Part shown: in pieces, positions 5,783 through 17,263 of the stretch
Numbering within the stretch: position 1 is the stretch's first letter
Layout: every line of letters begins with the position of its first letter
Virus record (IMG/VR): IMGVR_UViG_3300042562_001598
Coordinates: 186,001 to 250,000 of that record
Direction: 5' to 3' (one strand)
Length of the DNA stretch: 64,000 bases
Position numbers and translations under genes: made by a program
Notes under the pieces: model-generated
Databases searched by the model: none
What the model was told of the DNA's origin: nothing
Seen by the model: the letters and a program-made list of their open reading frames with translations, nothing else

Positions 5783-7414
5783 ATGAAAAATAAAATAATT
5801 TTAGAACAAGAACCTACAGGTAAACCACCTGTAACAACTACAACCATAGATTTAGGACAAGCATATAAATCAGGTTGTTTCACAATTTATAAATGGTTTA
5901 CTATTGACCCAGCGCCACAACCTAAAAAAACAAAAACAGGTCAATCTGTAATCTCTGGTAAAAACAATAAAGGTGAACAAATATTTTTTTACGAAAATGG
6001 TACCGTTAAAAATGTTATAACACAAAAACAATTAAATTGGTCTTGTAGTAATGTATCAACTGAATCTAATAGTATTTTATCAAATTTTGGTATTACTAAA
6101 AATGATAAAGAAAAAGTAAAACAATTTACACCAATATTACAAGGGTATATTAATAAAGGTGCGGTATCTGATGTATTTACACCATGGAATAATATGTTAT
6201 CTGTTAATTTTCCTGATGTTACAAAATTAACCCAATCAGGTGACATACCATTTAATTTACCACTTAATTTAGCGGATTTAGAAAGTAAATACAAACCAAT
6301 TCCTGGGTTAGATAAAACATATAACTGGAATAATGTTAAAATTTATTTACCTTACAAGGAAACGGAAAATTTAACAACACCAGGAAAAGTTAATTTAACT
6401 GTTGCTGATTGTCAGACAAAATTAAAAGAATATTTTATTTCCGCAATTCAAACTAATGCGGGTATTACTCAAGCTATGGATTCAACACAAAGTCTTAAAT
6501 ATCAAAATGATATTAGAAGATGTTGGGCGAATAACGCTTATAAGGATTTTAAAGGTATTACAAAAGATGATATCTCAAATTTAACTAGTCAATTAACACC
6601 TTTTGGATTCTTCGAAAGAAACCTTAGTTATAATAATATTAAAAAAATATTTAAAGGAGGAACAAAATATCTAACACCAAGAAACGCGTTTCCTTATATT
6701 TTTGATATTGAAGAAAGAATAAAAAAAGAATCAACAATAGATAATTTAGACTCATTAATTAAAGAAAATTTAATAATGTCTTTAAACGAAAAAAAGAAAA
6801 ATGTTTTAACTGAAAATACAATCCTTAAAAATAGAACCGAAATATTGTTAGAAGGTGGTATGCCAACAACAAAAGAAGGTCAAGAAAAATTAATTGACGA
6901 AATTATTAACGAAGCAATTTCATTAAACTCACAAGGTTATACTCAAGAATTAATTAATGAGAATTTTTGGGATGCAATTAAAGGTTTATTTGGAAGTCAT
7001 ATAGGTGGTGGTGTAGTTGAAATGTTTAAGGAGAAATTTATGAGATACCTTATCGGTAAATTGACCCCAATTGACCCTGATGGATGGGGTGCTGGAATAG
7101 TTGAGAAAGCTTTCGGTAATATCCCAGTATCAGATTATTTTAATGGTAAAATATTAGAATGTGATTATTTAACACATGTTATCGCAAAATCATTAGTTGA
7201 AGAAGTTGTCGCTAAAGCAGGTCAAAAAATGGGTGCTGAAAACGCAATATTTGATGTGTTAAGAAACTCTATAGTTAACCAACTTGATGATACAGATTTT
7301 GCTAAAAATATAGAACACGGTTTATCAAAAATAGTATGTCCAGCTATTCAAGGTATCTCAGGCAAAATGTCAACAGCCGTAGATAAAATGAAGGACAAAG
7401 CTTTGGCAGCTTAA
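5783..7414 (+). CDS. Large hypothetical protein, probably head-packaged
   Basis: 543 aa; MKNKIILEQ start; several [IL]xE sites. Confidence 0.6.
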   Translation: MKNKIILEQEPTGKPPVTTTTIDLGQAYKSGCFTIYKWFTIDPAPQPKKTKTGQSVISGKNNKGEQIFFYENGTVKNVITQKQLNWSCSNVSTESNSILSNFGITKNDKEKVKQFTPILQGYINKGAVSDVFTPWNNMLSVNFPDVTKLTQSGDIPFNLPLNLADLESKYKPIPGLDKTYNWNNVKIYLPYKETENLTTPGKVNLTVADCQTKLKEYFISAIQTNAGITQAMDSTQSLKYQNDIRRCWANNAYKDFKGITKDDISNLTSQLTPFGFFERNLSYNNIKKIFKGGTKYLTPRNAFPYIFDIEERIKKESTIDNLDSLIKENLIMSLNEKKKNVLTENTILKNRTEILLEGGMPTTKEGQEKLIDEIINEAISLNSQGYTQELINENFWDAIKGLFGSHIGGGVVEMFKEKFMRYLIGKLTPIDPDGWGAGIVEKAFGNIPVSDYFNGKILECDYLTHVIAKSLVEEVVAKAGQKMGAENAIFDVLRNSIVNQLDDTDFAKNIEHGLSKIVCPAIQGISGKMSTAVDKMKDKALAA

Positions 7415-7582
7415 AAGTACCTTTGGAGTAGTGTCCAAATGGAATAAACCTATCTAAAAGAAAGGAGGGGAAGTTCCAAATCTTGCAAAAAGATGTCATT
7501 TGACATCTTTTTGTGGTTAATACATTTTGATATATCAATTTTAATTTTATATATTTGTCCTATAATCTTAAAACAAATAATT

Positions 7583-7837
7583 ATGCCAGACTTTACAGCA
7601 GACATTGATATCTCACCAAGTGATTATATCTACGAATGTTCCGATTACGAAATAAAAGAACTAATAACAGAACTTAAAGAAAGCGGTTACTTAAAGGGGG
7701 GTATTACAGATACCGACGATGATAATATTATTGACGACGAATGGACAGAAATGATTAATAAAATCTATAAAAATAGATTATTACTATCCAACGAAGATGA
7801 GGAAATCATTAGAAATATTTCCAAAAAATTAATTTAA
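7583..7837 (+). CDS. Hypothetical protein
   Basis: Start moved to MPDFTAD after a TATATTTG promoter. Confidence 0.6.
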   Translation: MPDFTADIDISPSDYIYECSDYEIKELITELKESGYLKGGITDTDDDNIIDDEWTEMINKIYKNRLLLSNEDEEIIRNISKKLI

Positions 7838-7912
7838 TTGAAAAATATTTGACTTTAAGTGAATTTTACTTAATATCGTAATACTTATTATAAACAAAGT
7901 AAAAAACACAAA

Positions 7913-8035
7913 ATGAAAAATATTAATAAACATATGAATTTAGTATCCTGGAATCAACAATTTAATAATTGTTCGTATCCGAGTGTGCAAAATATTGATT
8001 CAGATGATTCATTGAGTGATTTAACAACAATCTAA
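7913..8035 (+). CDS. Putative leader peptide 1 (40 aa)
   Basis: MKNINKHMNLVSWNQQFNNCSYPSVQNIDSDDSLSDLTTI; A-rich start context; immediately upstream of a terminator and the tRNA array. Confidence 0.5.
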   Translation: MKNINKHMNLVSWNQQFNNCSYPSVQNIDSDDSLSDLTTI

Positions 8036-8054
8036 AAGTTAAACATAAAATATC

Positions 8055-8091
8055 AAAAATTCTGAATCTAAAAAGTTCAGAATTTTTTTTT
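8055..8091 (+). terminator. Intrinsic terminator / candidate attenuator
   Basis: AAAAATTCTGAA-loop-TTCAGAATTTTT followed by T-run. Confidence 0.75.
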
Positions 8092-8099
8092 ATAATAAA

Positions 8100-8131
8100 T
8101 TTGACACAGAACAAAAAATAGTATATCTTTG
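8100..8131 (+). promoter_or_regulatory. Bacteroidota sigma-A promoter (TTTG ... TAnnTTTG)
   Basis: TTTG at 8100, TATCTTTG at 8124-8131; same -7 motif at e.g. 12964, 13387, 14834, 21319. Confidence 0.75.
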
Positions 8132-8182
8132 TAGAGAATTAAAAAAGGGTGTTCATTGACATAACGGTAAACAAATTATAAA

Positions 8183-8270
8183 GGAGAATTGGCAGAGCGG
8201 TCGAATGCGGCAGTCTTGAAAACTGTTGTACTGAAAGGTACCGGGGGTTCGAATCCCTCATTCTCCGCCA
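8183..8270 (+). tRNA. tRNA-Ser(UGA)
   Basis: Canonical class II cloverleaf, CTTGAAA loop, encoded CCA. Confidence 0.95.
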
Positions 8271-8276
8271 TAGTAT

Positions 8277-8348
8277 TGGATTATAGTGTATCGGTTCGCA
8301 CATAACTCTTTGAAAGTTATAGGTCAAGTTCGACTCTTGATAATCCAA
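8277..8348 (+). tRNA. tRNA-Gln(UUG)
   Basis: TGGATTA/TAATCCA acceptor; loop CTTTGAA; TTCGACT T-loop. Confidence 0.85.
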
Positions 8349-8358
8349 CAAAATAATA

Positions 8359-8430
8359 CGGGGTGTATTCTCGGAGTGAGAAACCTGCCTTGGACGCAGG
8401 AAGCGGAAAGTGCGACTCTTTTCACCCCGA
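8359..8430 (+). tRNA. tRNA-Pro(UGG)
   Basis: CGGGGTG/CACCCCG; loop CTTGGAC; T-loop TGCGACT. Confidence 0.85.
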
Positions 8431-8504
8431 CGGAGTGGACTGTTACTAATTCATAGACTTGGCCTCAAGTGCATAGAATTAGAATTTCAGTCTGACTGAT
8501 AATT

Positions 8505-8575
8505 ACCCCCAAGGCTTTAAAGTGAAGCACGATACTTTTAATATCGGGAAGAAGGAGCATTACCTTCTGGGGGTA
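8505..8575 (+). tRNA. tRNA-Lys(UUU)
   Basis: ACCCCCA/TGGGGGT; loop CTTTTAA; atypical T-loop AGCATTA. Confidence 0.8.
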
Positions 8576-8636
8576 CAAGTGTTTTGGTTTAGAGATTATT
8601 CCGGGTATTGGCTTTAATAATACGAAAACTCTAATT

Positions 8637-8717
8637 GGGTCGCAAAAGTCGTTCGGATACGGCAGCTTGACTGTAAATCAAGTCCTCACGGGAGTGGTTC
8701 GAGTCCACTGTTATCCA
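8637..8717 (+). tRNA. tRNA-Tyr(GUA), imperfect acceptor stem
   Basis: GCTTGA-CTGTAAA-TCAAGT arm and good T-arm; acceptor pairing weak. Confidence 0.6.
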
Positions 8718-8773
8718 CTTTAGTTTATAGGTCGTACTGTCCTTGGGTTCTATAAAAATCCTAAAAAAGGTAA

Positions 8774-8846
8774 GGGTCTTTGGTATAGCTGGTGCGTACG
8801 TTAGTCTGAAGAACTAAAGGAACAGGTTCGATTCCTGTAGGACCCA
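8774..8846 (+). tRNA. tRNA-Phe(GAA)
   Basis: GGGTCTT/AGGACCC; loop CTGAAGA; TTCGATT. Confidence 0.9.
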
Positions 8847-8995
8847 CAAACAAGGTGACGCTACAGTCGTAAGATTCCGGAATCGAGAAGACAAAGAGCC
8901 TAAGTGTAAAGATGAGCTCCTACAGCCTTGGACTACTATTAAGGAATGATACGAGCCTCCAAAGTTCGAAAGGAGTCAGGTAGTAGTCAAAAATT

Positions 8996-9067
8996 GGACT
9001 TGTAGCTCAGTAGGAGAGCATTCGCCTGTTAAGCGAAGGGTCGGGATGGCAGAATTCCCCAAGTCCG
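8996..9067 (+). tRNA. tRNA-Asn(GUU)
   Basis: GGACTTG/CAAGTCC; loop CTGTTAA; atypical T-loop. Confidence 0.8.
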
Positions 9068-9143
9068 CGGAGTCCTGATATAACAGGAAACCCCCACTCC
9101 CATATGGCAGCCGGTCCGTTAAGCCGGTGAAGTGGGGTAATAT

Positions 9144-9215
9144 GGTGTTTCTAGCTTAATTGGTAAAGTGCTACACTGTGAATGTAGAGAACAGGGTTCG
9201 AAACCCGGAAACACA
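9144..9215 (+). tRNA. tRNA-His(GUG)
   Basis: G-1 plus GTGTTTC/GAAACAC; loop CTGTGAA. Confidence 0.88.
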
Positions 9216-9284
9216 CAAAAGGAACAGAATAATACCTGGACAGTCTTCAAGGAGACAGGGTAAAGTTTGGACAGCTCCTTAATT

Positions 9285-9355
9285 ACACAATACAGGCAAG
9301 GTGTCGGTCAAGTCTCCAAAACTTAGGCGGGTAAGTTCGATTCTTACATTGTGTG
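9285..9355 (+). tRNA. tRNA-Trp(CCA)
   Basis: ACACAAT/ATTGTGT; loop CTCCAAA; TTCGATT. Confidence 0.8.
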
Positions 9356-9392
9356 CAAAAAAGAAATGTTTAATTATTAATTATTAATTATT

Positions 9393-9899
9393 GTGAGTAA
9401 GTACCAGAAAACATTAGTTTTAGATTCCAGTTTTACCGCTAGAAGTATCATAACCACGGAGAGAGCTTTTGCTATTCATTATAAGGGAAACGCTGACGTA
9501 ATAAAAGAACACCCAGAAACATTTGGTTTAGTTAATCCAGACTTAAAGATTAAAAAACCATCAGTTATCAAAGTTTATAAATTTGTTAACCAAAACATCC
9601 AAAAAGTACCATTAAATAGAGACAATGTTTATCGTAGAGATAATCATCAGTGTGTTTATTGTGGATGTAATAATAGAAAGACCTTAACTTTAGACCATGT
9701 TTTACCCCAATCTAAGGGAGGAAAAGACACCTGGGACAACTTGGTTACCTGTTGTCTGAGATGTAACCGTGAGAAGTCTGATTTGACCCTGGAGGAGTAT
9801 GGTAAAGAAATACCCCAACCTAAACGACCCCACTTTTTAATGTTAATGAAACAATTGATGTATATTCCGGATGAGTGGAAACCTTATTTATTTTTTTAG
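9393..9899 (+). CDS. HNH endonuclease
   Basis: RDNHQCVYCG...TLDHVLPQSKGG...NLVTCCLRCNREK. Confidence 0.9.
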   Translation: MSKYQKTLVLDSSFTARSIITTERAFAIHYKGNADVIKEHPETFGLVNPDLKIKKPSVIKVYKFVNQNIQKVPLNRDNVYRRDNHQCVYCGCNNRKTLTLDHVLPQSKGGKDTWDNLVTCCLRCNREKSDLTLEEYGKEIPQPKRPHFLMLMKQLMYIPDEWKPYLFF

Positions 9900-9961
9900 T
9901 ATAAAATGTTTGGTGGATTGTAAAAAAGGTGTATCTTTGTAAAAATAAAAAGGTAGAAACT

Positions 9962-10198
9962 ATGGAACCAATAAAACAATTATTTTCAGATTTAAGTGAT
10001 GAAGAATTAATCTTAACAATTAAAGAGATTAAAGAATCGGATGTGACTGGATTATTTCCTGAAAACACAAATGTTAGAGCTTTATGTCAGGAATTGACTA
10101 AAATCACCAAGATGGATGTATCGTCACATTTATTGATGGTTAAAATCAATATTCTTAAAGAAGGGTCTTACAGATGGTTAAAAACAATTGAACAATAA
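9962..10198 (+). CDS. Hypothetical protein
   Basis: Start MEPIK after a TATCTTTG promoter. Confidence 0.6.
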   Translation: MEPIKQLFSDLSDEELILTIKEIKESDVTGLFPENTNVRALCQELTKITKMDVSSHLLMVKINILKEGSYRWLKTIEQ

Positions 10199-10211
10199 AA
10201 ACATAGAAATC

Positions 10212-10538
10212 ATGACATTAGAAAAAGAATTATTGGATTTTACTAACTGGTTGGTTGATAATAAATGGACCTTGGTTGGTAATGGTTTGTGTTTGAATAA
10301 CGACACTAAAAAACTTGTTTCAATTGGGGAATTGGTTCGTCAAAGTAATTCACTTAAAGATTATTACGAACAAGACTTCCAGGTGGGTGAAATTGTTAGA
10401 GAAAAGAACAGTGGTGACGAAGTTGAAATTAAAACCATTGAATATAATAAATTTGATAATGAATACCAATATTGGTATGAAGATGAAGATGGTGAGGAGT
10501 GGTATGGTTTCGCTGACGAGTTTGAGAAAATAAATTAA
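10212..10538 (+). CDS. Hypothetical protein
   Basis: ORF track; start moved to MTLEK. Confidence 0.6.
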   Translation: MTLEKELLDFTNWLVDNKWTLVGNGLCLNNDTKKLVSIGELVRQSNSLKDYYEQDFQVGEIVREKNSGDEVEIKTIEYNKFDNEYQYWYEDEDGEEWYGFADEFEKIN

Positions 10539-10597
10539 AATAAGTTTGGTATTAATAAAAAATTGATTTACATTTGCTAACACAAAACAGATAAACT

Positions 10598-10726
10598 ATG
10601 AAAACAAAGCCATCAATTACCAGTGTAGAGTTTAAGAATTTTTCAACAAGATTATGTAGAATGTATCCTGAGATAGGTTCAACATTTACAACTAAAGAAA
10701 TATACGACGAATATTTCGGTCGTTAA
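10598..10726 (+). CDS. Small hypothetical protein (42 aa)
   Basis: MKTKPSITSVEFKNFSTRLCRMYPEIGSTFTTKEIYDEYFGR after a TACATTTG promoter. Confidence 0.5.
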   Translation: MKTKPSITSVEFKNFSTRLCRMYPEIGSTFTTKEIYDEYFGR

Positions 10727-10735
10727 TTAGAATAA

Positions 10736-10807
10736 AGTCAGGTGGCTCATTGGTAAGAGCGACAGCCGAAATGGATGTGGGTACAGGTTCGATTCCTGTC
10801 CTGACAA
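10736..10807 (+). ncRNA. AGTCAGG-family tRNA-like RNA, copy 1
   Basis: AGTCAGG...ACAGG TTCGATT CCTGT CCTGACA; D-arm present; no 7-nt anticodon loop. Confidence 0.75.
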
Positions 10808-10823
10808 CAAATTTAGAAAATAT

Positions 10824-10930
10824 CCTTCTGTAGTTTAACAAGAGCAAAACACAGAGACGAATACATCTCCCTACGGTAACCATCCCAAGAATGTATTAAG
10901 AGTATGTGGGTTCAACTCCCACTGGAAGGG
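10824..10930 (+). ncRNA. tRNA-like RNA with enlarged core
   Basis: CCTTCTG/TGGAAGG acceptor, D-arm, GTGGG TTCAACT CCCAC T-arm; ~55-nt core. Confidence 0.65.
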
Positions 10931-10979
10931 CAAATCATAGGAGTAATTACCTTATGACTGAGAGATTCGAAGCTCTCGA

Positions 10980-11079
10980 TTGATTATGGTGTAAAGGCGC
11001 ACGGTAGAAGGTAGTAGGTCCGAATTATGCGAGACCGAGGGTGGAAACAGGATTAAGGTTCGAATCCTTATTAGTCAGC
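10980..11079 (+). ncRNA. tRNA-like RNA with enlarged core
   Basis: TTGATTA/TAGTCAG; TAAGG TTCGAAT CCTTA T-arm; no anticodon arm. Confidence 0.6.
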
Positions 11080-11086
11080 AAAATAA

Positions 11087-11204
11087 AGTCAGGTGGCGGA
11101 ATTGGTAGACGCAACATGGTATGGCAATACAGAGGGTGATAGTATAAGTCCTATCAGTGGTAAGTGACCTCTCTTATAACAGGTTCGAATCCTTGTCCTG
11201 ACTA
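11087..11204 (+). ncRNA. AGTCAGG-family tRNA-like RNA, copy 2
   Basis: Leu-type D-arm GGCGGAATTGGTAGACGC; ~65-nt two-hairpin core. Confidence 0.8.
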
Positions 11205-11229
11205 CAAATTTAAAATAAAAATAAAAATT

Positions 11230-11316
11230 ATGAAAAGAAAAGACGTTTACGTTTGTGTTTGTGATGGTAGTTGTACTAGTCCAGAGGATTGTTCACCAAT
11301 TAAGTCAAAACGATAA
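11230..11316 (+). CDS. Cys-rich micropeptide (28 aa)
   Basis: MKRKDVYVCVCDGSCTSPEDCSPIKSKR, A-rich start context. Confidence 0.45.
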   Translation: MKRKDVYVCVCDGSCTSPEDCSPIKSKR

Positions 11317-11323
11317 TAAAAAT

Positions 11324-11448
11324 AGTCAGGTGGCGGAAAACGAGGTATGCCAATAGGGTGTAGCCCGCAAGCAAGACGCTAATTGTAGTAAGTGTACTCA
11401 TACGACATATAATCGGTACACATACAGGTTGGAATCCTGTTCTGACTA
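11324..11448 (+). ncRNA. AGTCAGG-family tRNA-like RNA, copy 3
   Basis: Same ends; insertion in D-loop plus GTGTAC/GTACAC core hairpin. Confidence 0.75.
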
Positions 11449-11569
11449 ATAAATAGTAGAAACAACATCCCCCCAGTTTCTTGGTCTGTGCACGGATAGG
11501 ATTTGTAAGGGGGTTGAGATTGGATGACGTTTATCTTTTGTAATCCAACAATAAACAGAAAAAGATGTT

Positions 11570-11703
11570 AGTCAGGTGGCGAAAGGAGTGGGGTGTCCCT
11601 GCTCGTGGTAGACGCACACCTTTATGGTTAAAGCGGAGTGTGAAGTATAAACACACCATACAGTTAACAGTATGAATTACGGGTTCGAATCCTGTCCTGA
11701 CTA
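11570..11703 (+). ncRNA. AGTCAGG-family tRNA-like RNA, copy 4
   Basis: Same ends; hairpin inserted in D-loop; multi-hairpin core. Confidence 0.8.
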
Positions 11704-11782
11704 CGATTGCTGAGGAACGGTCCAGAGTAGTGGAATTATAGTTAAATTCAATACGTTGACAGCTTGGAAAGACAAGCAAAAC

Positions 11783-11884
11783 AGTCAGGTGGCAGAGTGG
11801 TTTAATGCTAACTAGGGAGAGTCTGAGGGTGGTAACCTAGTACCTATACCCATATGACCGCAGGTTCGAATCCTGTCCTGACTA
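11783..11884 (+). ncRNA. AGTCAGG-family tRNA-like RNA, copy 5
   Basis: Ser-type D-arm GGCAGAGTGGTTTAATGC; ACTAGG/CCTAGT stem with ~19-nt loop. Confidence 0.8.
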
Positions 11885-11893
11885 CAAATACAA

Positions 11894-12015
11894 GGTTCCT
11901 GAGATAAAGGATTAGCTTAGCACTAACTAACTAAATACTTAAACTCCAGCATAACGGTTTGCTACCCCAGTTAGTGATGGTGGTGGAAAGATAGGTTCAA
12001 CTCCTATAGGGACTA
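11894..12015 (+). ncRNA. tRNA-like RNA with long core
   Basis: GGTTCCT/AGGGACT; ATAGG TTCAACT CCTAT; CACTAACT/AGTTAGTG core stem. Confidence 0.6.
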
Positions 12016-12088
12016 CAAAGCTGACAACCTAGTGATTGATGTGTGAAGCTAACACATAAGTTGTTGACTGATGGAAAGACATCAAAAT

Positions 12089-12173
12089 AGTCAGGTGGTG
12101 AAATGGATAGACACTACCCTGTTTGGGGGAGAGGTGAAAGAAACTCGTACAGGTTCGAATCCTGTCCTGACTA
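12089..12173 (+). ncRNA. AGTCAGG-family tRNA-like RNA, copy 6
   Basis: Class-II-like shape but the anticodon arm has no canonical 7-nt loop. Confidence 0.8.
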
Positions 12174-12183
12174 CAAAATAATT

Positions 12184-12253
12184 GGTCTTGTTGGTCGAAG
12201 CGGCCGGTAAGTCTGCAAAACTTACGGAGGGGGTGCAATACCCTCCAAGACCT
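12184..12253 (+). tRNA. tRNA-Cys(GCA)
   Basis: GGTCTTG/CAAGACC, U73; loop CTGCAAA. Confidence 0.8.
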
Positions 12254-12321
12254 CAAAAGTTTAACAATTTGGTAGATACCGGTGATAATCACCGGTAAGT
12301 AAGGAAAATATAAATTAGAAA

Positions 12322-12517
12322 AGTTTAACACCTCGATGGTTGTCTGTAACCAACATATGAAACAGAATAGGCGTGTTGATAGTGGTAAGCCTCGCTAATT
12401 GTAACCGATTAAGTTCAAAGGAAGATAAGGACTAGTACGCCTGTGACGAACACGACGAATTCAGGATTTCCCATAGTAGCCCCGTTACAAACCAGAGTGC
12501 CGCAGAGGTGTTAAATT
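12322..12517 (+). ncRNA. Rod-shaped ~196-nt RNA, 6S-RNA-like architecture
   Basis: 13-bp terminal stem; TGGTT/AACCA and TGTAAC/GTTACA stems; central bubble; ATAGGCGT/ACGCCTGT closing stem. Confidence 0.5.
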
Positions 12518-12538
12518 TTTTTTAATATATTTATCAAT

Positions 12539-12922
12539 ATGAAAAAATTTGTAATTACAGAAGAAGAAAAAGACGATATATTAAACCAACATAACGAAAT
12601 GATGGATAAACCAAAACTTCCGGAAAATAGAAGAATGTTAGATTTGGATATAACTCCAATGAGTTTAAAAAAATTTAAGTCTCAAGGTCTTACACCATAT
12701 TACTATGATGGTGATACTGATATTATTGAAATGAAAGGTCCAATTAAAGGTAAAGTATATAATACAAAACCAAAAGAAGTTTTCTTATTAACATCTGATG
12801 AATATGATAAGATTAAACAATTATCAGATAAAATTAAGGAAATGATTGAACTTAAATTATACACTATTAAACTATATAAGGAATACCTCCCATCTAGTTT
12901 AATTAAAATTGTGGAAAAATAA
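12539..12922 (+). CDS. Leader-family cargo protein
   Basis: MKKFVITEEEKDDILNQH leader; TATTTAT upstream. Confidence 0.7.
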   Translation: MKKFVITEEEKDDILNQHNEMMDKPKLPENRRMLDLDITPMSLKKFKSQGLTPYYYDGDTDIIEMKGPIKGKVYNTKPKEVFLLTSDEYDKIKQLSDKIKEMIELKLYTIKLYKEYLPSSLIKIVEK

Positions 12923-12983
12923 AAAAAATATTCTAAAAAGTTTGTGGATATTAGAAAAAGAGTTATCTTTGTCAAAGAAAATA

Positions 12984-13115
12984 AGTCTTAGCCGAAAAGA
13001 CTGAGCACAAAACTAGAGTTTGTGTAGGAATACATCTAAAGATGGTGGCTAAGTGGGTCTCTTGGATACACCCGACCAAGCGTAAGGCGACAACACGTTA
13101 GGGAAAGCTGTCGTA
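12984..13115 (+). ncRNA. Unknown structured RNA with its own promoter and terminator
   Basis: TATCTTTG at 12964; several hairpins; terminator AACCCCCAA/TTGGGGGTTTT at ~13121-13146. Confidence 0.55.
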
Positions 13116-13220
13116 ATACTAACCCCCAACTATAATTGGGGGTTTTATAAAAAAAATTAAAAATACTTTACACTTTAGTGAATTAGTATATATTTATTAG
13201 AAATAACAATAAAACAACAA

Positions 13221-13295
13221 ATGAAAAATCTAAACATATCACTTACAATAGCGGCAACTGAGGGTAGAGATACAACTTGGATGTTGATGGTATGA
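13221..13295 (+). CDS. Putative leader peptide 2 (24 aa)
   Basis: MKNLNISLTIAATEGRDTTWMLMV followed by terminator 13318-13354, upstream of the second tRNA cluster. Confidence 0.5.
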   Translation: MKNLNISLTIAATEGRDTTWMLMV

Positions 13296-13415
13296 AATAT
13301 ATTTAACTAAAAATATTAAAAAATCCATCTTCAAAAAAAAGGTGGATTTTTTTTTATGTGTTGTTGTTATAATCAAATATTATCCTTATCTTTGTTAAAA
13401 GAAATTATAAAAAAT

Positions 13416-13592
13416 ATGAAAGATACAAAAACTAACCAGGAGGTTACATTAAACGAAGAATTGGTGATGGAGTATTCACCAATATTAGGAACAACATACA
13501 CATTAAAACCAGTTGAGTGGGATGAAGACCACGCGTTTAGTTTAGTTCTAAATGATATCCTTGATGATTTGGATATTGATGAGTTAAAATAG
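13416..13592 (+). CDS. Small hypothetical protein
   Basis: Start moved to MKDTK after TATCTTTG. Confidence 0.5.
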   Translation: MKDTKTNQEVTLNEELVMEYSPILGTTYTLKPVEWDEDHAFSLVLNDILDDLDIDELK

Positions 13593-13601
13593 TAATACAA
13601 T

Positions 13602-13673
13602 GGCCCGGTCGTCTAAAAGTTAGGACCTCACATTTTCATCGTGAAAACCGGGGAGCGTTACCCCGTCGGGCTA
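13602..13673 (+). tRNA. tRNA-Glu(UUC)
   Basis: GGCCCGG/TCGGGCT; loop TTTTCAT; T-loop AGCGTTA. Confidence 0.8.
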
Positions 13674-13696
13674 CGAAAGATATAAAATAAATTCAC

Positions 13697-13776
13697 GCGG
13701 TTGTGAAAGATATAGGTGAATGTCGGGTTCGATTCCCGGCAACCAGGACGGTTCGACTCCGCTGGTGCTGGCCGCA
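13697..13776 (+). ncRNA. Double-T-arm tRNA-like RNA
   Basis: Two tandem TTCGA(T/C)T hairpins closed by GCGGTT/GGCCGC. Confidence 0.55.
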
Positions 13777-13807
13777 ATATACTATTTCATTTTTTATATC
13801 TTTAATT

Positions 13808-13879
13808 GGGGCTATCGTATAAAAGCTATTACAATGGTTTTGCAAATCATAGAACACGGAGCGTTACCGTGTAGCTCCA
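13808..13879 (+). tRNA. tRNA-Ala(UGC)
   Basis: GGGGCTA/TAGCTCC with G3:U70; loop TTTGCAA; T-loop AGCGTTA. Confidence 0.88.
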
Positions 13880-13946
13880 CAAAAAAAACAAAAATAAGTT
13901 TGATTATTAAAATAATATAACTTAAATTTGTAGAGAATAAAAACAA

Positions 13947-14017
13947 AGTCTAGTAGTGAAAAAGAATCATCCAACACTGTCACTGTTGAGTAGCCGGAGC
14001 ATTACCGGTCTAGACTG
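13947..14017 (+). tRNA. tRNA-Asp(GUC)
   Basis: AGTCTAG/CTAGACT, G73; loop CTGTCAC; T-loop AGCATTA. Confidence 0.82.
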
Positions 14018-14034
14018 CAAAATAAATAATACAT

Positions 14035-14105
14035 CGCGGGAAGCTAAGTAGCAGTCGGGTCTCATAAGCCATGATGTGTAGTAGGAGCGTTACCTTCTCC
14101 CGCAA
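14035..14105 (+). tRNA. tRNA-fMet(CAU), divergent
   Basis: C1:A72 mismatch; loop CTCATAA; weak anticodon stem; T-loop AGCGTTA. Confidence 0.65.
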
Positions 14106-14127
14106 CTAATTTAATAAATAATTAACT

Positions 14128-14301
14128 ATGGCTACAGCACCGCAAAAATCAAGAAAACAAAGAGCTTTAAGTGTTCTTGAAACACAATTAAGTAATTCAG
14201 TTAAAACTGAAAAAGGAACAACAGATGTTAAAATTCCTCTAACTGAAGCAGATGTTAAGAGAATTAAAAAAGAAATTGAAATCTTAAAAACAAGAGTTTA
14301 A
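14128..14301 (+). CDS. Small basic protein (57 aa)
   Basis: MATAPQKSRKQRALSVLE...VKRIKKEIEILKTRV; phage-like codon usage. Confidence 0.6.
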   Translation: MATAPQKSRKQRALSVLETQLSNSVKTEKGTTDVKIPLTEADVKRIKKEIEILKTRV

Positions 14302-14310
14302 TTTAGTTCC

Positions 14311-14382
14311 GCGGGTGTCGTATAATGGTCATTACAATTGACTTCCAATCAATAGACGAGATTTCGATTATCTCCATCCGCT
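14311..14382 (+). tRNA. tRNA-Gly(UCC)
   Basis: GCGGGTG/CATCCGC, U73; loop CTTCCAA. Confidence 0.88.
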
Positions 14383-14570
14383 CTTTCTCAGAGAATTACG
14401 ACGAAAACTGGGTTTTAGCCCCTGTTATAACACCACCAAGATACTCTAGCAATTCCGGATTAGTTAGGTTGCGGTGATAAGGAAATAAGTCGGGTATAGC
14501 TAACCAAAAAGACGAAAACCTTGTAGTGGATTATGGTGACGCTCCATAGCAGTAAATCTCTTATTATAAT

Positions 14571-14640
14571 AATTGGGTAGCTCAGTGGATAGAGCAGTCA
14601 ATATATTGATGTGCCGGTGGTTTGATTCCACCCCCAATTA
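14571..14640 (+). ncRNA. tRNA-like RNA with collapsed anticodon loop
   Basis: AATTGGG/CCCAATT; canonical D-arm; GTCAA-TATA-TTGAT arm with a 4-nt loop. Confidence 0.65.
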
Positions 14641-14644
14641 TAAC

Positions 14645-14719
14645 ACCCCCATGGGCAAACTGGTAAAGTCGCTTCACTTAGGATGAAGAGTTCTGTGAGT
14701 TCAACTCTCACTGGGGGTA
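14645..14719 (+). tRNA. tRNA-Leu(UAG) with short variable arm
   Basis: ACCCCCA/TGGGGGT; loop CTTAGGA; TTCAACT. Confidence 0.8.
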
Positions 14720-14723
14720 CAAA

Positions 14724-14793
14724 TTAGAATTAGCTTATAGTAAAGCGGCAGGAGTTTAACTTACTGCATAACGGATTCCAACACCGGTTCTAA
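14724..14793 (+). ncRNA. Degenerate tRNA-like element
   Basis: TTAGAAT/GTTCTAA acceptor and D-arm; irregular anticodon and T arms. Confidence 0.4.
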
Positions 14794-15376
14794 TTTTTTA
14801 TAAAATAAAATAGGTTTATAAGTATAGATTTTATATATTTGTTAAAATAAACATAACCCAGTAGATAGGTCCGCCAAGAAAGTCTTTAAACAACGTGGGA
14901 ACTGCGGCTCTCCCAATGTGGCTGGAATGTTTTAATAAAAGGCTGAACATCGAACCTTTGTAATAGACTATAAAAGGTCTTTAAGACGTAGTATTGTAAT
15001 AAATATTATGCTTTACATAAAGATATCAACAGAGATGTTGAATGCGTTGTTCCCTTGAGAAAGGAAAATAGAGTGGCTACAAGGTTGTTGCAACAACTAG
15101 TAAAGACTAACGCAAATGAGCTCTCAGCAAGCAACCTGTTTGGGTTCATCCAGCAGCTGCGTGACCCTACTCTTATACAAGCTCCGTAACTGATAACTCG
15201 GCAAGCTATAAGAAAGGGTGCTAAATAAAAACTACTTGAGTAAGTGGGGGTGGTCAATCAACAACCCATTGAAGTTTCAGGTGAATATATAGACAGGATT
15301 GGTGAGTCTATATAAGTAAGTAACAAGTTAATGTGTTTTTAGAAAGATTGAATAGTTTTTAACATTGGCGAAAAAT

Positions 15377-15460
15377 AGTCAGGTGACGTAATGTAAACGT
15401 TATGGTGCAAGTCCATTTCAACTCAAGTGAGTAATATAGGTGCGAATCCTGTTCTGACTA
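15377..15460 (+). ncRNA. AGTCAGG-family tRNA-like RNA, copy 7
   Basis: Same acceptor; core contains a second T-loop-like hairpin ATGG-TGCAAGT-CCAT. Confidence 0.75.
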
Positions 15461-15676
15461 CAATGAGTAAGAGATACTCAGAAGTCTTTAATCCAAGACT
15501 TTTTAACAATGGATTGGGTAATGAATTGGACATCCTCAAAGCCAATTCCTTGGGTGAAAGACAGGTAGTAGCGTCTCCAAGTAAACTTGACTTTTTTGTT
15601 TGGGTAAGACCGTCTTCGTTTTTGAAAGGATAAAACGAGTAATATCTACACCGAAATATCTCATCGGTGGTTTTTT

Positions 15677-15748
15677 GGTCTCGTAGCTCAAAGGTGGAGC
15701 AGTTCGCTCATAACGAAAAGGATGGGATATCGTAATTCCCCGAGACCA
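15677..15748 (+). tRNA. tRNA(CAU): elongator Met or Ile2
   Basis: GGTCTCG/CGAGACC; loop CTCATAA; atypical T-loop ATCGTAA. Confidence 0.8.
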
Positions 15749-15872
15749 CAAATTATCCCCCCTTTGTGTTCTATCACATCGGCCAACCTCCAGGGAAACT
15801 TGGGGGTTTTTTTAAAAAATATTATGTGAAACTTAAATATAATTTATTTATATTTGTAAAAAGAAAATAAGT

Positions 15873-16124
15873 ATGGGAGTAAATAGAGAAAAATTGGCAG
15901 ATAACCTATATGAGTTACAATACCAATTAAAGATGTCAAAAGATAAGGAGTTGATATATAAAGATATTTTATCTAATATTGAGGGGTCATTGGTTGAGTT
16001 ATTTCAACGAGAGACGGAGAATGAAAGGTTTAACCTGGGTGATGAGATTAACTTCCGGGAGAGTATGGTTAACCTAAAAAGTTCGTTAGACGAGTATAAA
16101 AGATTATATAAATTAAGATTTTAA
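15873..16124 (+). CDS. Hypothetical protein
   Basis: ORF track; TATATTTG promoter. Confidence 0.65.
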   Translation: MGVNREKLADNLYELQYQLKMSKDKELIYKDILSNIEGSLVELFQRETENERFNLGDEINFRESMVNLKSSLDEYKRLYKLRF

Positions 16125-16125
16125 T

Positions 16126-16344
16126 ATGGACGACAAAGTATACAATCCTTCAACCTATCCATTGGTGGAGACTGCAATAACTAATAGAATAATTATTAAA
16201 GACCCGGGTAAGGAGATGAGGGATGATTTTGCTGGTCAGGCAATGATGGCGTTAATTAATAATTTGGGTAGTAGTGATTATGTGGAGACAGCTAAAATAG
16301 CGTATAAGTATGCTGACGCAATGATGAAAGTAAGAAATAAATAA
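16126..16344 (+). CDS. Small phage protein (RDxFAxxAM...AYxxADAM family)
   Basis: Motif widespread in phage small proteins. Confidence 0.65.
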   Translation: MDDKVYNPSTYPLVETAITNRIIIKDPGKEMRDDFAGQAMMALINNLGSSDYVETAKIAYKYADAMMKVRNK

Positions 16345-16356
16345 ATAATAAATAAA

Positions 16357-16809
16357 ATGAAAAGAAGAATTTACCTAGATGATATCCGTACACCAGTTGA
16401 GGACAATTGGATTGTTGTAAGAGATTATAATGAATTTGTTAAAAAAGTTATGGAGATTGGCGTTAAGAACATTGATTTCATTTCTTTGGACCACGATTTG
16501 GGGGATACTGCTATGGCGGAATATTACAACAATGTATCTAAAAATTATGTTTTAGACTACAATAACATTGATGAGAAAACTGGTTATGACGCCGCTAAAT
16601 GGTTGGTTAATGAGTTTTATTCAGTTAATGAAGATAGAATTAATATGACTAGTGAACAAAAAAGAAAATCTGATTTTATTTTCCCAACTGTTTATGTGCA
16701 TTCAGCAAATCCGGTCGGAGCTCACAATATCTGTGGTTATGTTAACAATTTCTATAAAAACGAAAAACAGAAAGAAACTTGTATTAGAGTGAATATTCCA
16801 ATTAAATAA
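16357..16809 (+). CDS. Cyclic-phosphate-processing receiver (cREC) domain protein
   Basis: IYLDDIR, ISLDHDLG, TGYD, VHSANPVG motifs. Confidence 0.75.
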   Translation: MKRRIYLDDIRTPVEDNWIVVRDYNEFVKKVMEIGVKNIDFISLDHDLGDTAMAEYYNNVSKNYVLDYNNIDEKTGYDAAKWLVNEFYSVNEDRINMTSEQKRKSDFIFPTVYVHSANPVGAHNICGYVNNFYKNEKQKETCIRVNIPIK

Positions 16810-16891
16810 AAAGTTTTTCACTTTCTGTTTGGTAGATTAAAAGTTTTATTGTAGTTTTGTCATATCAAAATAACAATAAAACTTTTTTATT

Positions 16892-17263
16892 ATGAAATCA
16901 CGTAGCAAAACATTAGGATTACACGAATGGTCAAAAGAAGATACAATCGTAACATTGTATTACACAAAATACGGAACATATGGTTTGTATTTGAAAGATG
17001 AGAGTTCGTTAGCAAAATGGATTGGAACTTCACTTGGTTCCTTGAAGATGCAATCTGGAAACTTTAGAGGGTTAATGGGTGAGACTGAAAGAGCCTTGAG
17101 TGATTACTCTAAATTACAAGCGGAAGTTTATAATGAGTATGGTGATATGACTAAAATACAATTGATGAAAGTTGTTAAGTCAATCATTGACCAGGACGCT
17201 TATGAGAGAAACGCGATTTTAATTAAAATGGGTAAAGACCCTAAAAAAATGGTGAAAGCATGA
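16892..17263 (+). CDS. Hypothetical protein
   Basis: ORF track. Confidence 0.65.
   Translation: MKSRSKTLGLHEWSKEDTIVTLYYTKYGTYGLYLKDESSLAKWIGTSLGSLKMQSGNFRGLMGETERALSDYSKLQAEVYNEYGDMTKIQLMKVVKSIIDQDAYERNAILIKMGKDPKKMVKA

Follow-up and report, generated by a model that had tools for sequence, protein, structure and literature searches.

A short leader ORF, a terminator and a matching codon set: a candidate attenuator of a tRNA array in a probable Bacteroidota jumbo phage

The window analysed in this study, a stretch of 64,000 nucleotides, comprises bases 186001–250000 of the 282-kb IMG/VR virus record IMGVR_UViG_3300042562_001598 (30% G+C) and carries two arrays of tRNA genes, each behind a short leader open reading frame (ORF). 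The gap of 345 nt (7838–8182) between a gene ending at 7837 and the first gene of tRNA array 1, tRNA-Ser(UGA) at 8183, contains, in this order, a promoter-like element (P1), an A-rich 5′ untranslated region (UTR), a 40-codon ORF (leader ORF 1), a hairpin followed by nine T, a second promoter-like element (P2) and a conserved motif. All features of the two leader modules and of array 1 are located on the + strand. An original prediction, which read this gap as a ribosome-mediated attenuator in front of a phage tRNA array, was followed up here by comparison with relatives of the locus. The element is probably a jumbo phage of a freshwater Bacteroidota; the host was deduced from the promoter motif, from the lake-water origin of the metagenomes holding this sequence and from the contig of one relative, which was binned into a Bacteroidetes metagenome-assembled genome (MAG).

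Leader ORF 1 (MKNINKHMNLVSWNQQFNNCSYPSVQNIDSDDSLSDLTTI; 7913–8035) extends over 40 codons from the ATG at 7913 to the TAA at 8035, as had been predicted, and its stop codon lies 19–20 nt 5′ of the terminator stem, in agreement with the proposed distance of about 20 nt. Four of its codons, TCC, TCG, CCG and GTG, had been singled out as uncommon. They account for 5%, 5%, 11% and 9%, respectively, of the codons of their amino acid in 191 long ORFs of this genome and all four are indeed rare, but conservation is limited to TCG (codon 21) and CCG (codon 23), both of which are invariant across the family, while TCC and GTG vary.

Relatives were obtained as 29 IMG/VR contigs (43–322 kb), located by degenerate searches, and as further metagenome contigs, which together yielded 35 distinct leader sequences (alignment A4); the metagenomes contain near-identical as well as diverged homologues of the leader peptide. 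An independent search with an N-terminal peptide pattern recovered the same 29 contigs and one unrelated protein. The codons TGT TCG TAT CCG are identical in all 29 contigs, and as this second search used the N-terminal pattern only, their invariance was not imposed by the query. Ten contigs (L059–L068) encoding a protein of ~75 aa with the segment HMNVDFWRQQF were discarded as unrelated; the segment resembles HMNVVIWKQQF of the leader, which is probably a coincidence of the search pattern. The relatives form three groups, namely clade A, to which the window belongs, the large clade B and the paraphyletic group C, which includes contig L018. Each contig encoding a homologue of the 543-aa protein upstream of the leader with 48–67% identity carries a 40-codon ORF at the same place. 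In L018 (40% identity of this homologue) the ORF comprises 41 codons, and L019, the most distant contig fetched (34%), ends before the leader region. The tRNA array begins ~220–320 nt after the ATG in every locus with enough downstream DNA.

All 35 sequences contain an ORF of 36–41 codons which starts at the same invariant ATG. Insertions and deletions within the leader occur in multiples of three, and the start context is A-rich like that of the genes of this genome. Substitutions were counted by parsimony on a maximum-likelihood tree and compared with an expectation in which the same mutation spectrum was placed at random. Codons 1–32 showed 41 synonymous, 73 non-synonymous and 1 stop change, as compared to 26, 80 and 8.8 expected; none of 5,000 simulations reached 41 synonymous changes (P < 0.0002) and the avoidance of stop codons was likewise significant (P = 0.001). 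This evolutionary evidence indicates that leader ORF 1 is translated and that its frame is under selection. The constraint is uneven, with codons 5–9 and 13–23 being almost invariant and the C-terminal third being free. W13 and P23 are invariant, and variable positions are 2–4, 10–12, 14 and 18. The ORF also contains a conserved hairpin, H1 (7949–7981; inner stem 7956–7962 with 7967–7973), in which all changes keep the pairing via G-U and no double compensatory change was found.

The intrinsic terminator (8055–8091) is composed of a stem (8055–8067/8075–8087), a loop of 7 nt (8068–8074) and nine T (8083–8091). Its hairpin has a folding energy of −11.2 kcal/mol (z = −4.8), which none of 200 shuffled sequences equalled, and the stem is paired in all 35 leaders (11–12 pairs) with a compensatory change from U-A to C-G at 8061:8081 and several G-U-compatible changes. 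The description of this terminator as strong goes rather far, as the stem is AU-rich and has 2 G-C pairs; for this reason, the terminator was not listed by a consensus scan. The 5′ strand of the antiterminator, region 2 (GATTCAGA; 7997–8004), is located in codons 29–31 of the ORF. Region 3 (TCTGAATC; 8061–8068) comprises the upper 5′ arm of the terminator and the first base of its loop and can pair either with region 2 or with the 3′ arm. The two regions had been described as exact complements. Region 2 is indeed the reverse complement of region 3, but the eighth pair is found only in the clade of the window, and the conserved core of the antiterminator consists of 7 bp (7997–8003 with 8062–8068).

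Taken for the window sequence alone, a complementarity of 8 nt is only weakly above chance (P 0.03–0.06, against random genome segments or shuffles), and the significance of the pairing derives from its conservation and covariation in the relatives. Conservation in relatives had been suggested as a check, and the 7-bp core proved to be paired in 35 of 35 sequences. Position 7997:8068 is G-C in 15 and A-U in 20 of them, and 7998:8067 is A-U in 15 and G-C in 20. Clade B differs from all other sequences at only six positions in 373 nt (6–7 fixed differences when it is compared with its relatives), four of which form these two base pairs. Among the variable ungapped columns, 13 of 4,560 pairs covary perfectly, most of them following the deep split between clade A and the rest, and the only stacked antiparallel covarying pair among the 4,560 is 7997:8068 with 7998:8067. 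As the helix had been named before any relative was seen, this constitutes a fair test, and the comparison indicates that the antiterminator pairing is under selection.

If the 3′ arm of the terminator is omitted, the minimum-energy structure of the window sequence includes the pairing 7997–8003/8062–8068, and RNAalifold predicted the terminator for full-length leaders and the 2:3 helix once the 3′ arm was removed. The calculated duplex energies are −10.8 kcal/mol for 2:3, −12.5 kcal/mol for 3:4 and −5.5 kcal/mol for 1:2, and the terminator and antiterminator conformations of the whole leader are predicted to be ~3 kcal/mol apart (−32.6 vs −29.9). Region 1 (UGAAU; 7935–7939) can pair with region 2 (AUUCA) as a weak anti-antiterminator, the end pair of which is kept in 33 of 35 sequences. 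The distances from the ATG to CCG (codon 23) and from there to region 2 are constant across the 35 sequences; the loop connecting regions 2 and 3 has a variable length of 56–66 nt, and where the stop codon lies is variable as well. Given the usual footprint sizes, a ribosome whose A site has moved no further than codon 23–24 would end just short of 7997, and this is also the place where the invariant block of the peptide stops. In E. coli, a ribosome at the stop codon represses a terminator only within ~27–30 nt (PMC4824070); the spacing of 19–33 nt between stop codon and terminator observed here may add a direct ribosome effect.

The array behind this leader (8183–9355) encodes tRNA-Ser(UGA), Gln(UUG), Pro(UGG), Lys(UUU), Tyr(GUA), Phe(GAA), Asn(GUU), His(GUG) and a possible Trp(CCA)-like tRNA; three of these nine calls are relaxed or Rfam-only, namely Lys(UUU), called at a relaxed threshold, Asn(GUU), called by Rfam, and the Trp(CCA)-like gene (9284–9355). 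Codons 2–24 (7916–7984), the most conserved part of the peptide and the proposed sensor zone, contain a cognate codon for each array-1 tRNA, and TGT TCG TAT CCG (7970–7981) within this zone is invariant including its synonymous sites. In the window, all nine array-1 tRNAs have a cognate codon among the first 23 codons (coverage P = 9e-4), and among 100,000 real windows of 23 codons there is not one that equals the leader in coverage and, at the same time, in its number of cognate codons. The leaders of contigs L031 and L043 cover 13/13 and 14/14 tRNAs of their arrays, respectively, and that of L041 needs 24 codons to cover 15/15, among them AGU, cognate to Ser(GCU), and CGU, cognate to Arg(ACG). 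Of 20,292 real 27-codon windows, none equals L041, and the analytic probability of covering all 15 is ~3e-7. Since the members of the family are not independent, the codon match counts as one very improbable design and not as many. Asp, Leu and Thr, three amino acids without a tRNA gene in array 1, abound in the C-terminal tail of the peptide. L031 and L041 have a swapped array order with a Glu/Ala/Gly/Asp/Arg/Thr array 5′ of leader 1, and there, too, leader 1 matches the array behind it. The codons 5′ of region 2 are thus cognate to the downstream tRNAs, which is what the earlier suggestion of ribosomes stalling on a depleted tRNA pool directly predicts. Modelling has indicated that rare regulatory codons raise the sensitivity of attenuation, and the invariant rare codons TCG and CCG fit this result (PMC1183508).

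A second module was found in front of array 2. Leader ORF 2 (MKNLNISLTIAATEGRDTTWMLMV; 13221–13295) has 24 codons and is preceded by a promoter and 5′ UTR which are paralogous to those of leader 1 (74% identity), the sole such similarity in the genome. The sequence GAUGG (13286–13290) is complementary to CCAUC in the 5′ arm of the leader 2 terminator (13318–13361), a 14-bp hairpin (13318–13352) with a T run, behind which lie a promoter-like TATCTTTG site, then a small ORF and finally array 2 (Glu, Ala, Asp, Gly, Leu, Met and others). The codons of leader 2 correspond to the array-2 set, i.e. Ala, Thr, Glu, Gly, Arg(AGA), Asp, Leu and Met, and a comparison of leader 1 and leader 2 codons by array 1 and array 2 gave Fisher P values from 5e-5 to 0.03, depending on genome and definition of the zone. 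The leader 2 family comprises 33 distinct peptides of 22–24 residues from 77 IMG/VR contigs; contigs with such a module include L031, L036, L056 and L069–L139. In its subfamilies, the central residues are shuffled (TIAGTEGRDTT, GGTEADTLTRT, GGTDRTEATTP, TTGAEGRNPR, GGLAIAEDRSY) with the composition being kept, and the downstream tRNAs are mostly fully covered by the leader codons. Co-variation between leader 2 codons and arrays is only anecdotal, e.g. one subfamily has a Tyr codon together with tRNA-Tyr. The antiterminator strand (region 2′) is immediately followed by the stop codon, and among leader 2 sequences with the terminator arm CCATCTCC, 28 of 32 contain GGAGATGG upstream, which gives an antiterminator of 8–9 bp. 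This module would do for the second array what leader 1 is proposed to do for the first, and the repetition of the pattern in front of array 2 supports the attenuation reading.

Taken together, we consider it probable, at roughly two in three, that leader 1 acts as a ribosome-mediated transcription attenuator controlling read-through from P1 into tRNA array 1. The geometry described in the original prediction appears to be sound, because the ORF, the terminator and the named pairing are all conserved, the latter two with compensatory changes. According to this reading, RNA initiated at P1 would carry the leader ORF, whose codons 2–24 would present at least one codon for each downstream tRNA species including the rare invariant TCG and CCG, which tRNA-Ser(UGA) and tRNA-Pro(UGG), respectively, would read by U:G wobble. 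If one of these tRNAs is scarce, decoding would be slow and the ribosome would linger 5′ of 7997, so that 7997–8003 would be free to pair with the emerging 8062–8068; no terminator hairpin would form and RNA polymerase would enter the array. With fast decoding, the ribosome would cover or would just have unwound 7997–8003 while the terminator is made, and transcription would end at the U run. The net effect would be a negative feedback, with transcription of the array rising when the phage's own set of tRNAs is poorly supplied. The parts of the module, their conservation and covariation, the frame selection and the codon-to-tRNA match emerge from sequence comparison; we infer from them that ribosome stalling sets the switch, and likewise the direction of the response and its physiological trigger, which may be host tRNA cleavage, codon-usage mismatch or generally slow translation.

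A broader interpretation, which on balance we favour, is that jumbo phages of freshwater Bacteroidota carry multiplexed sensors of tRNA supply, each leader being a near-minimal "pangram" of one array combined with a terminator–antiterminator switch, and that two paralogous sensors split the repertoire. If any one of the tRNAs supplied by the phage ran short, the whole array would be transcribed more, and such a shortage could stem from codon-usage mismatch, host shut-off or tRNA-cleaving defence systems.

Several observations weigh against attenuation as described. The original prediction had cautioned that a host-type promoter 3′ of the terminator could drive the array independently, and for the window this caution was justified. 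P2 (8100–8131) consists of TTTG (8100–8103), 20 nt and TATCTTTG (8124–8131), directly 3′ of the terminator, and presumably provides a separate, unregulated input to the array, which narrows the regulatory range. It is kept in most relatives as TTTG-N19-TACCTTTG, but is missing in L031 and L041, where the terminator is separated from the first tRNA by only ~40 nt without a promoter motif. The covariation in the antiterminator probably reflects one evolutionary event, and a template-switch mutation between inverted repeats can mimic compensation without selection. The 1:2 pairing, a weak one of 5 bp (−5.5 kcal/mol), does not covary clearly, and the antiterminator of the window's own leader 2 has only 5 bp. 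With its stop codon 17–32 nt past region 2, leader 1 differs from the trp leader in that a ribosome terminating there would leave region 2 unmasked, so that transcription termination would have to depend on timing. With regard to the codons, there are one or few per tRNA and no runs, so that sensitivity may be low, and the sensor zone of the window keeps Val and Ile codons with no Val or Ile tRNA confidently identified in the genome. Not every tRNA gained or lost among the relatives is reflected in the leader codons; strict co-variation between leader 1 codons and array content was not seen, the leader being nearly constant while arrays gain and lose members. Finally, the sole match in RNA libraries is an assembled contig spanning the terminator which could equally be derived from DNA. 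This metatranscriptome contig of 1.2 kb from a 95%-identical relative starts in the upstream gene, crosses the terminator and ends within the first bases of tRNA-Ser; it comes without depth profile or strand, its end coincides with the polymorphism of the tRNA-Ser allele, and it is uninformative on termination.

Part of the data would also be accounted for by a functional 40-residue phage protein, for instance an early host-takeover or anti-defence peptide, with the hairpin as its terminator, P2 alone driving the array, and the complementarity to the terminator arm being incidental or serving mRNA stability. The peptide is conserved and under frame selection, gene callers predict the ORF in many metagenomes, P2 is a good promoter in most relatives, and phage early regions commonly contain cassettes made up of a promoter, a small ORF and a terminator. 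However, the stacked compensatory changes in ORF and terminator arm, the synonymous-site invariance of the rare codons TCG and CCG and the 15/15 match between codons and downstream tRNAs would be left unexplained by such a micro-protein. The shuffled residue order at constant composition in the paralogous leader 2, the absence of P2 in L031 and L041 and the lack of a Pfam or PHROG family for the peptide likewise speak against it; we regard this explanation as unlikely. The very strong conservation of the amino acids at codons 5–23, with an invariant Trp and an invariant Pro ten residues later, could alternatively point to an arrest peptide of the TnaC, SecM or Erm-leader type, in which the nascent chain W13 ... 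C-S-Y-P23 would stall on a small molecule or a translation factor and thereby free the antiterminator. As estimated from published footprint sizes, a stall at codon 23–24 would indeed place the leading edge of the ribosome just short of 7997. Yet the codon-to-tRNA match explains the same conservation and predicts in addition the content of leader 2, which combines a different, shuffled sequence with the same architecture, and the variation at positions 2–4, 10–12, 14 and 18 of leader 1 is not in favour of an arrest sequence either. No known arrest motif was recognised, though no search aimed at one was made. This possibility, too, seems improbable.

The RNA pairing is the best-supported part of the module, and antiterminators under the control of proteins or of tRNA are well known. 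The terminator–antiterminator switch could be real but be set without a ribosome, by an RNA-binding protein of phage or host or by uncharged tRNA in the manner of a T-box, with the ORF as a by-product. The frame selection on the ORF and a codon content which tracks the array speak against this; no T-box or other Rfam leader family was found at 7838–8182 at E values up to 1, and no repeated protein-binding motif was seen. We consider a switch of this kind very unlikely. Each of the three accounts explains only part of the data, and ribosome-mediated attenuation remains the reading which we prefer.

With regard to the remaining parts of the locus, a conserved motif is located just 5′ of the first tRNA (8150–8172; GTTCATTGACATAACGGTAAAC in the window, GTTATTTGAAATATTGGTAAG in relatives). 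In the general form GTT[AC]TTTGA[AC]ATATTGGTAAG, it precedes the first tRNA by 10–25 nt in every clade, contigs without P2 included (L041, 3377–3399), and it may be a signal for pre-tRNA processing or an unusual promoter. In clades B and C, a small hairpin (GGUA-GAGA/GAAA-UACC) is present in the 5′ UTR upstream of the leader ATG (A4 columns ~68–83; L041, 3162–3173); it shows a compensatory change in L018 (GGUG...CACC) and is deleted in clade A, the clade of the window. The 543-aa protein encoded upstream (5783–7414) is 48–67% identical in relatives whose leader region is 97–99% identical, i.e. a fast-evolving gene adjoins a very conserved regulatory block. In a search of PHROGs, neither the 40-aa peptide nor the neighbouring 543-aa protein had a family, a small upstream protein gave a marginal match (E = 0.006), and the sole recognised protein was an HNH endonuclease; Pfam contained no family for the leader peptide. 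A cmscan of positions 7000–17000 against Rfam at E values up to 1 identified only tRNAs and chance plastid motifs, with no T-box in this range and no match in 7838–8182 to the covariance models of leader families (Trp, His, Leu, Thr, Phe and others).

Both promoter-like elements of the gap are of the Bacteroidota type (TTTG, ~19–20 nt, TAnnTTTG) and not of the TTGACA/TATAAT type. P1 (7848–7878) is formed by TTTG (7848–7851), 19 nt and TAATATCG (7871–7878), and clades B and C have the consensus TAAGTTTG or TAACTTTG as its second element. The motif TTTG-N18-21-TAnnTTTG, which we take to be the Bacteroidota promoter consensus, occurs 13 times in the window with 4.1 expected and no shuffle reaching 13, and its sites are concentrated in the tRNA region. 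Such motifs, often TATCTTTG, are found at 8100, 9909, 10545, 12941, 13899 and 16828 between tRNA sub-arrays, and because of this recurrence many internal promoters are predicted for the tRNA region. A sigma-70 consensus scan of the window was uninformative (46 sites, 46 expected), and TTGAC motifs considered as −35 boxes were dropped once the relatives showed the Bacteroidota consensus. The phage genes have A-rich leaders without a Shine-Dalgarno sequence. DNA and protein searches of public phage records yielded no match, and the sole close match to this uncultivated viral genome is a fragment which is identical across the entire compared stretch.

Within the tRNA region, genes at 8505–8576, 8996–9067, 9284–9355, 13602–13673, 13808–13879, 13947–14018 and 14571–14640 were missed by ARAGORN at default settings or by Rfam; they comprise Lys(UUU), an Asn(GUU) with an odd T arm, the Trp(CCA)-like gene, which scores only like a tRNA-Sec, the genes for Glu, Ala and Asp, and a further gene whose anticodon loop is unreadable. 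The count for the window is therefore ~20 tRNA genes and not 13. A gene for an HNH endonuclease lies inside the tRNA region (9393–9899), and this position is conserved in most relatives. Four contigs (L006, L007, L013 and L017) have leaders that are 97–99% identical to that of the window, and nevertheless carry a clearly different allele of tRNA-Ser(UGA) (window 8183–8270); the mosaic junction is located exactly at the start of the tRNA, where metagenome assemblies break as well.

The roles of phage tRNA genes are debated and include codon compensation, replacement of degraded host tRNAs and escape from anticodon nucleases, with recent work addressing the evasion of tRNA-targeting defences (PMC10264068, PMC11555353, PMC12409363). 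How phages regulate these genes is a largely unknown area, and a full-text literature search found no description of leader-peptide control of phage tRNA genes. The class of mechanism proposed here is known; new are its target, viral tRNA arrays, and a sensor made of many codons. If the attenuation reading is correct, the phage would measure the sufficiency of tRNAs by means of the codons served by its own tRNAs and would respond to it. It would then be the first known case of attenuation of tRNA genes and of a leader peptide that senses many tRNAs simultaneously, would carry leader-peptide attenuation beyond amino-acid operons to RNA genes and to viruses, and would represent a new sensor design with many different single codons in place of a run of one. 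The combination of short ORF, terminator, tRNA array and matching codon content provides a signature by which other phages, plasmids and tRNA array units can be screened, and the module could serve as a compact part for synthetic feedback control of tRNA supply.

The closest resemblance is to the trpL, hisL, leuL, thrL, ilvL and pheL attenuators of amino-acid operons, which share with the phage leaders a short translated ORF, an intrinsic terminator and a mutually exclusive antiterminator, the 5′ strand of which lies in or next to the ORF, with regulatory codons so placed that a stalled ribosome would leave this strand free. Rare regulatory codons are a further common feature (PMC1183508). The stop codon of leader 2 abuts the antiterminator strand as in the trp leader, whereas that of leader 1 is located 17–32 nt past it. 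In contrast to the operon attenuators, which regulate biosynthetic enzymes through a run of codons for one amino acid, the phage leaders precede viral tRNA genes and contain a near-minimal codon set for up to 15 tRNAs; their host lineage is probably Bacteroidota, and they do not match any Rfam leader family. The pheM leader of pheST controls an aminoacyl-tRNA synthetase gene by attenuation and senses Phe. As is proposed for the phage, leader-peptide attenuation there acts on the translation apparatus and decoding speed feeds back on decoding capacity, but pheM is chromosomal, responds to one amino acid and controls a protein gene. T-boxes, which are found mainly in Firmicutes, follow a similar logic in that a low level of usable tRNA switches on the antiterminator and raises the expression of genes restoring tRNA function; unlike the proposed phage attenuator, they bind uncharged tRNA directly by specifier codon and T-box sequence without translation. 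The TnaC, SecM and Erm leaders resemble the phage leader in having a short conserved peptide with conserved Trp and Pro and, as is proposed for the phage, a stalled ribosome that alters the fate of the downstream RNA. They depend on peptide sequence and ligand, whereas here the codons match the downstream tRNAs and the paralogue is shuffled.

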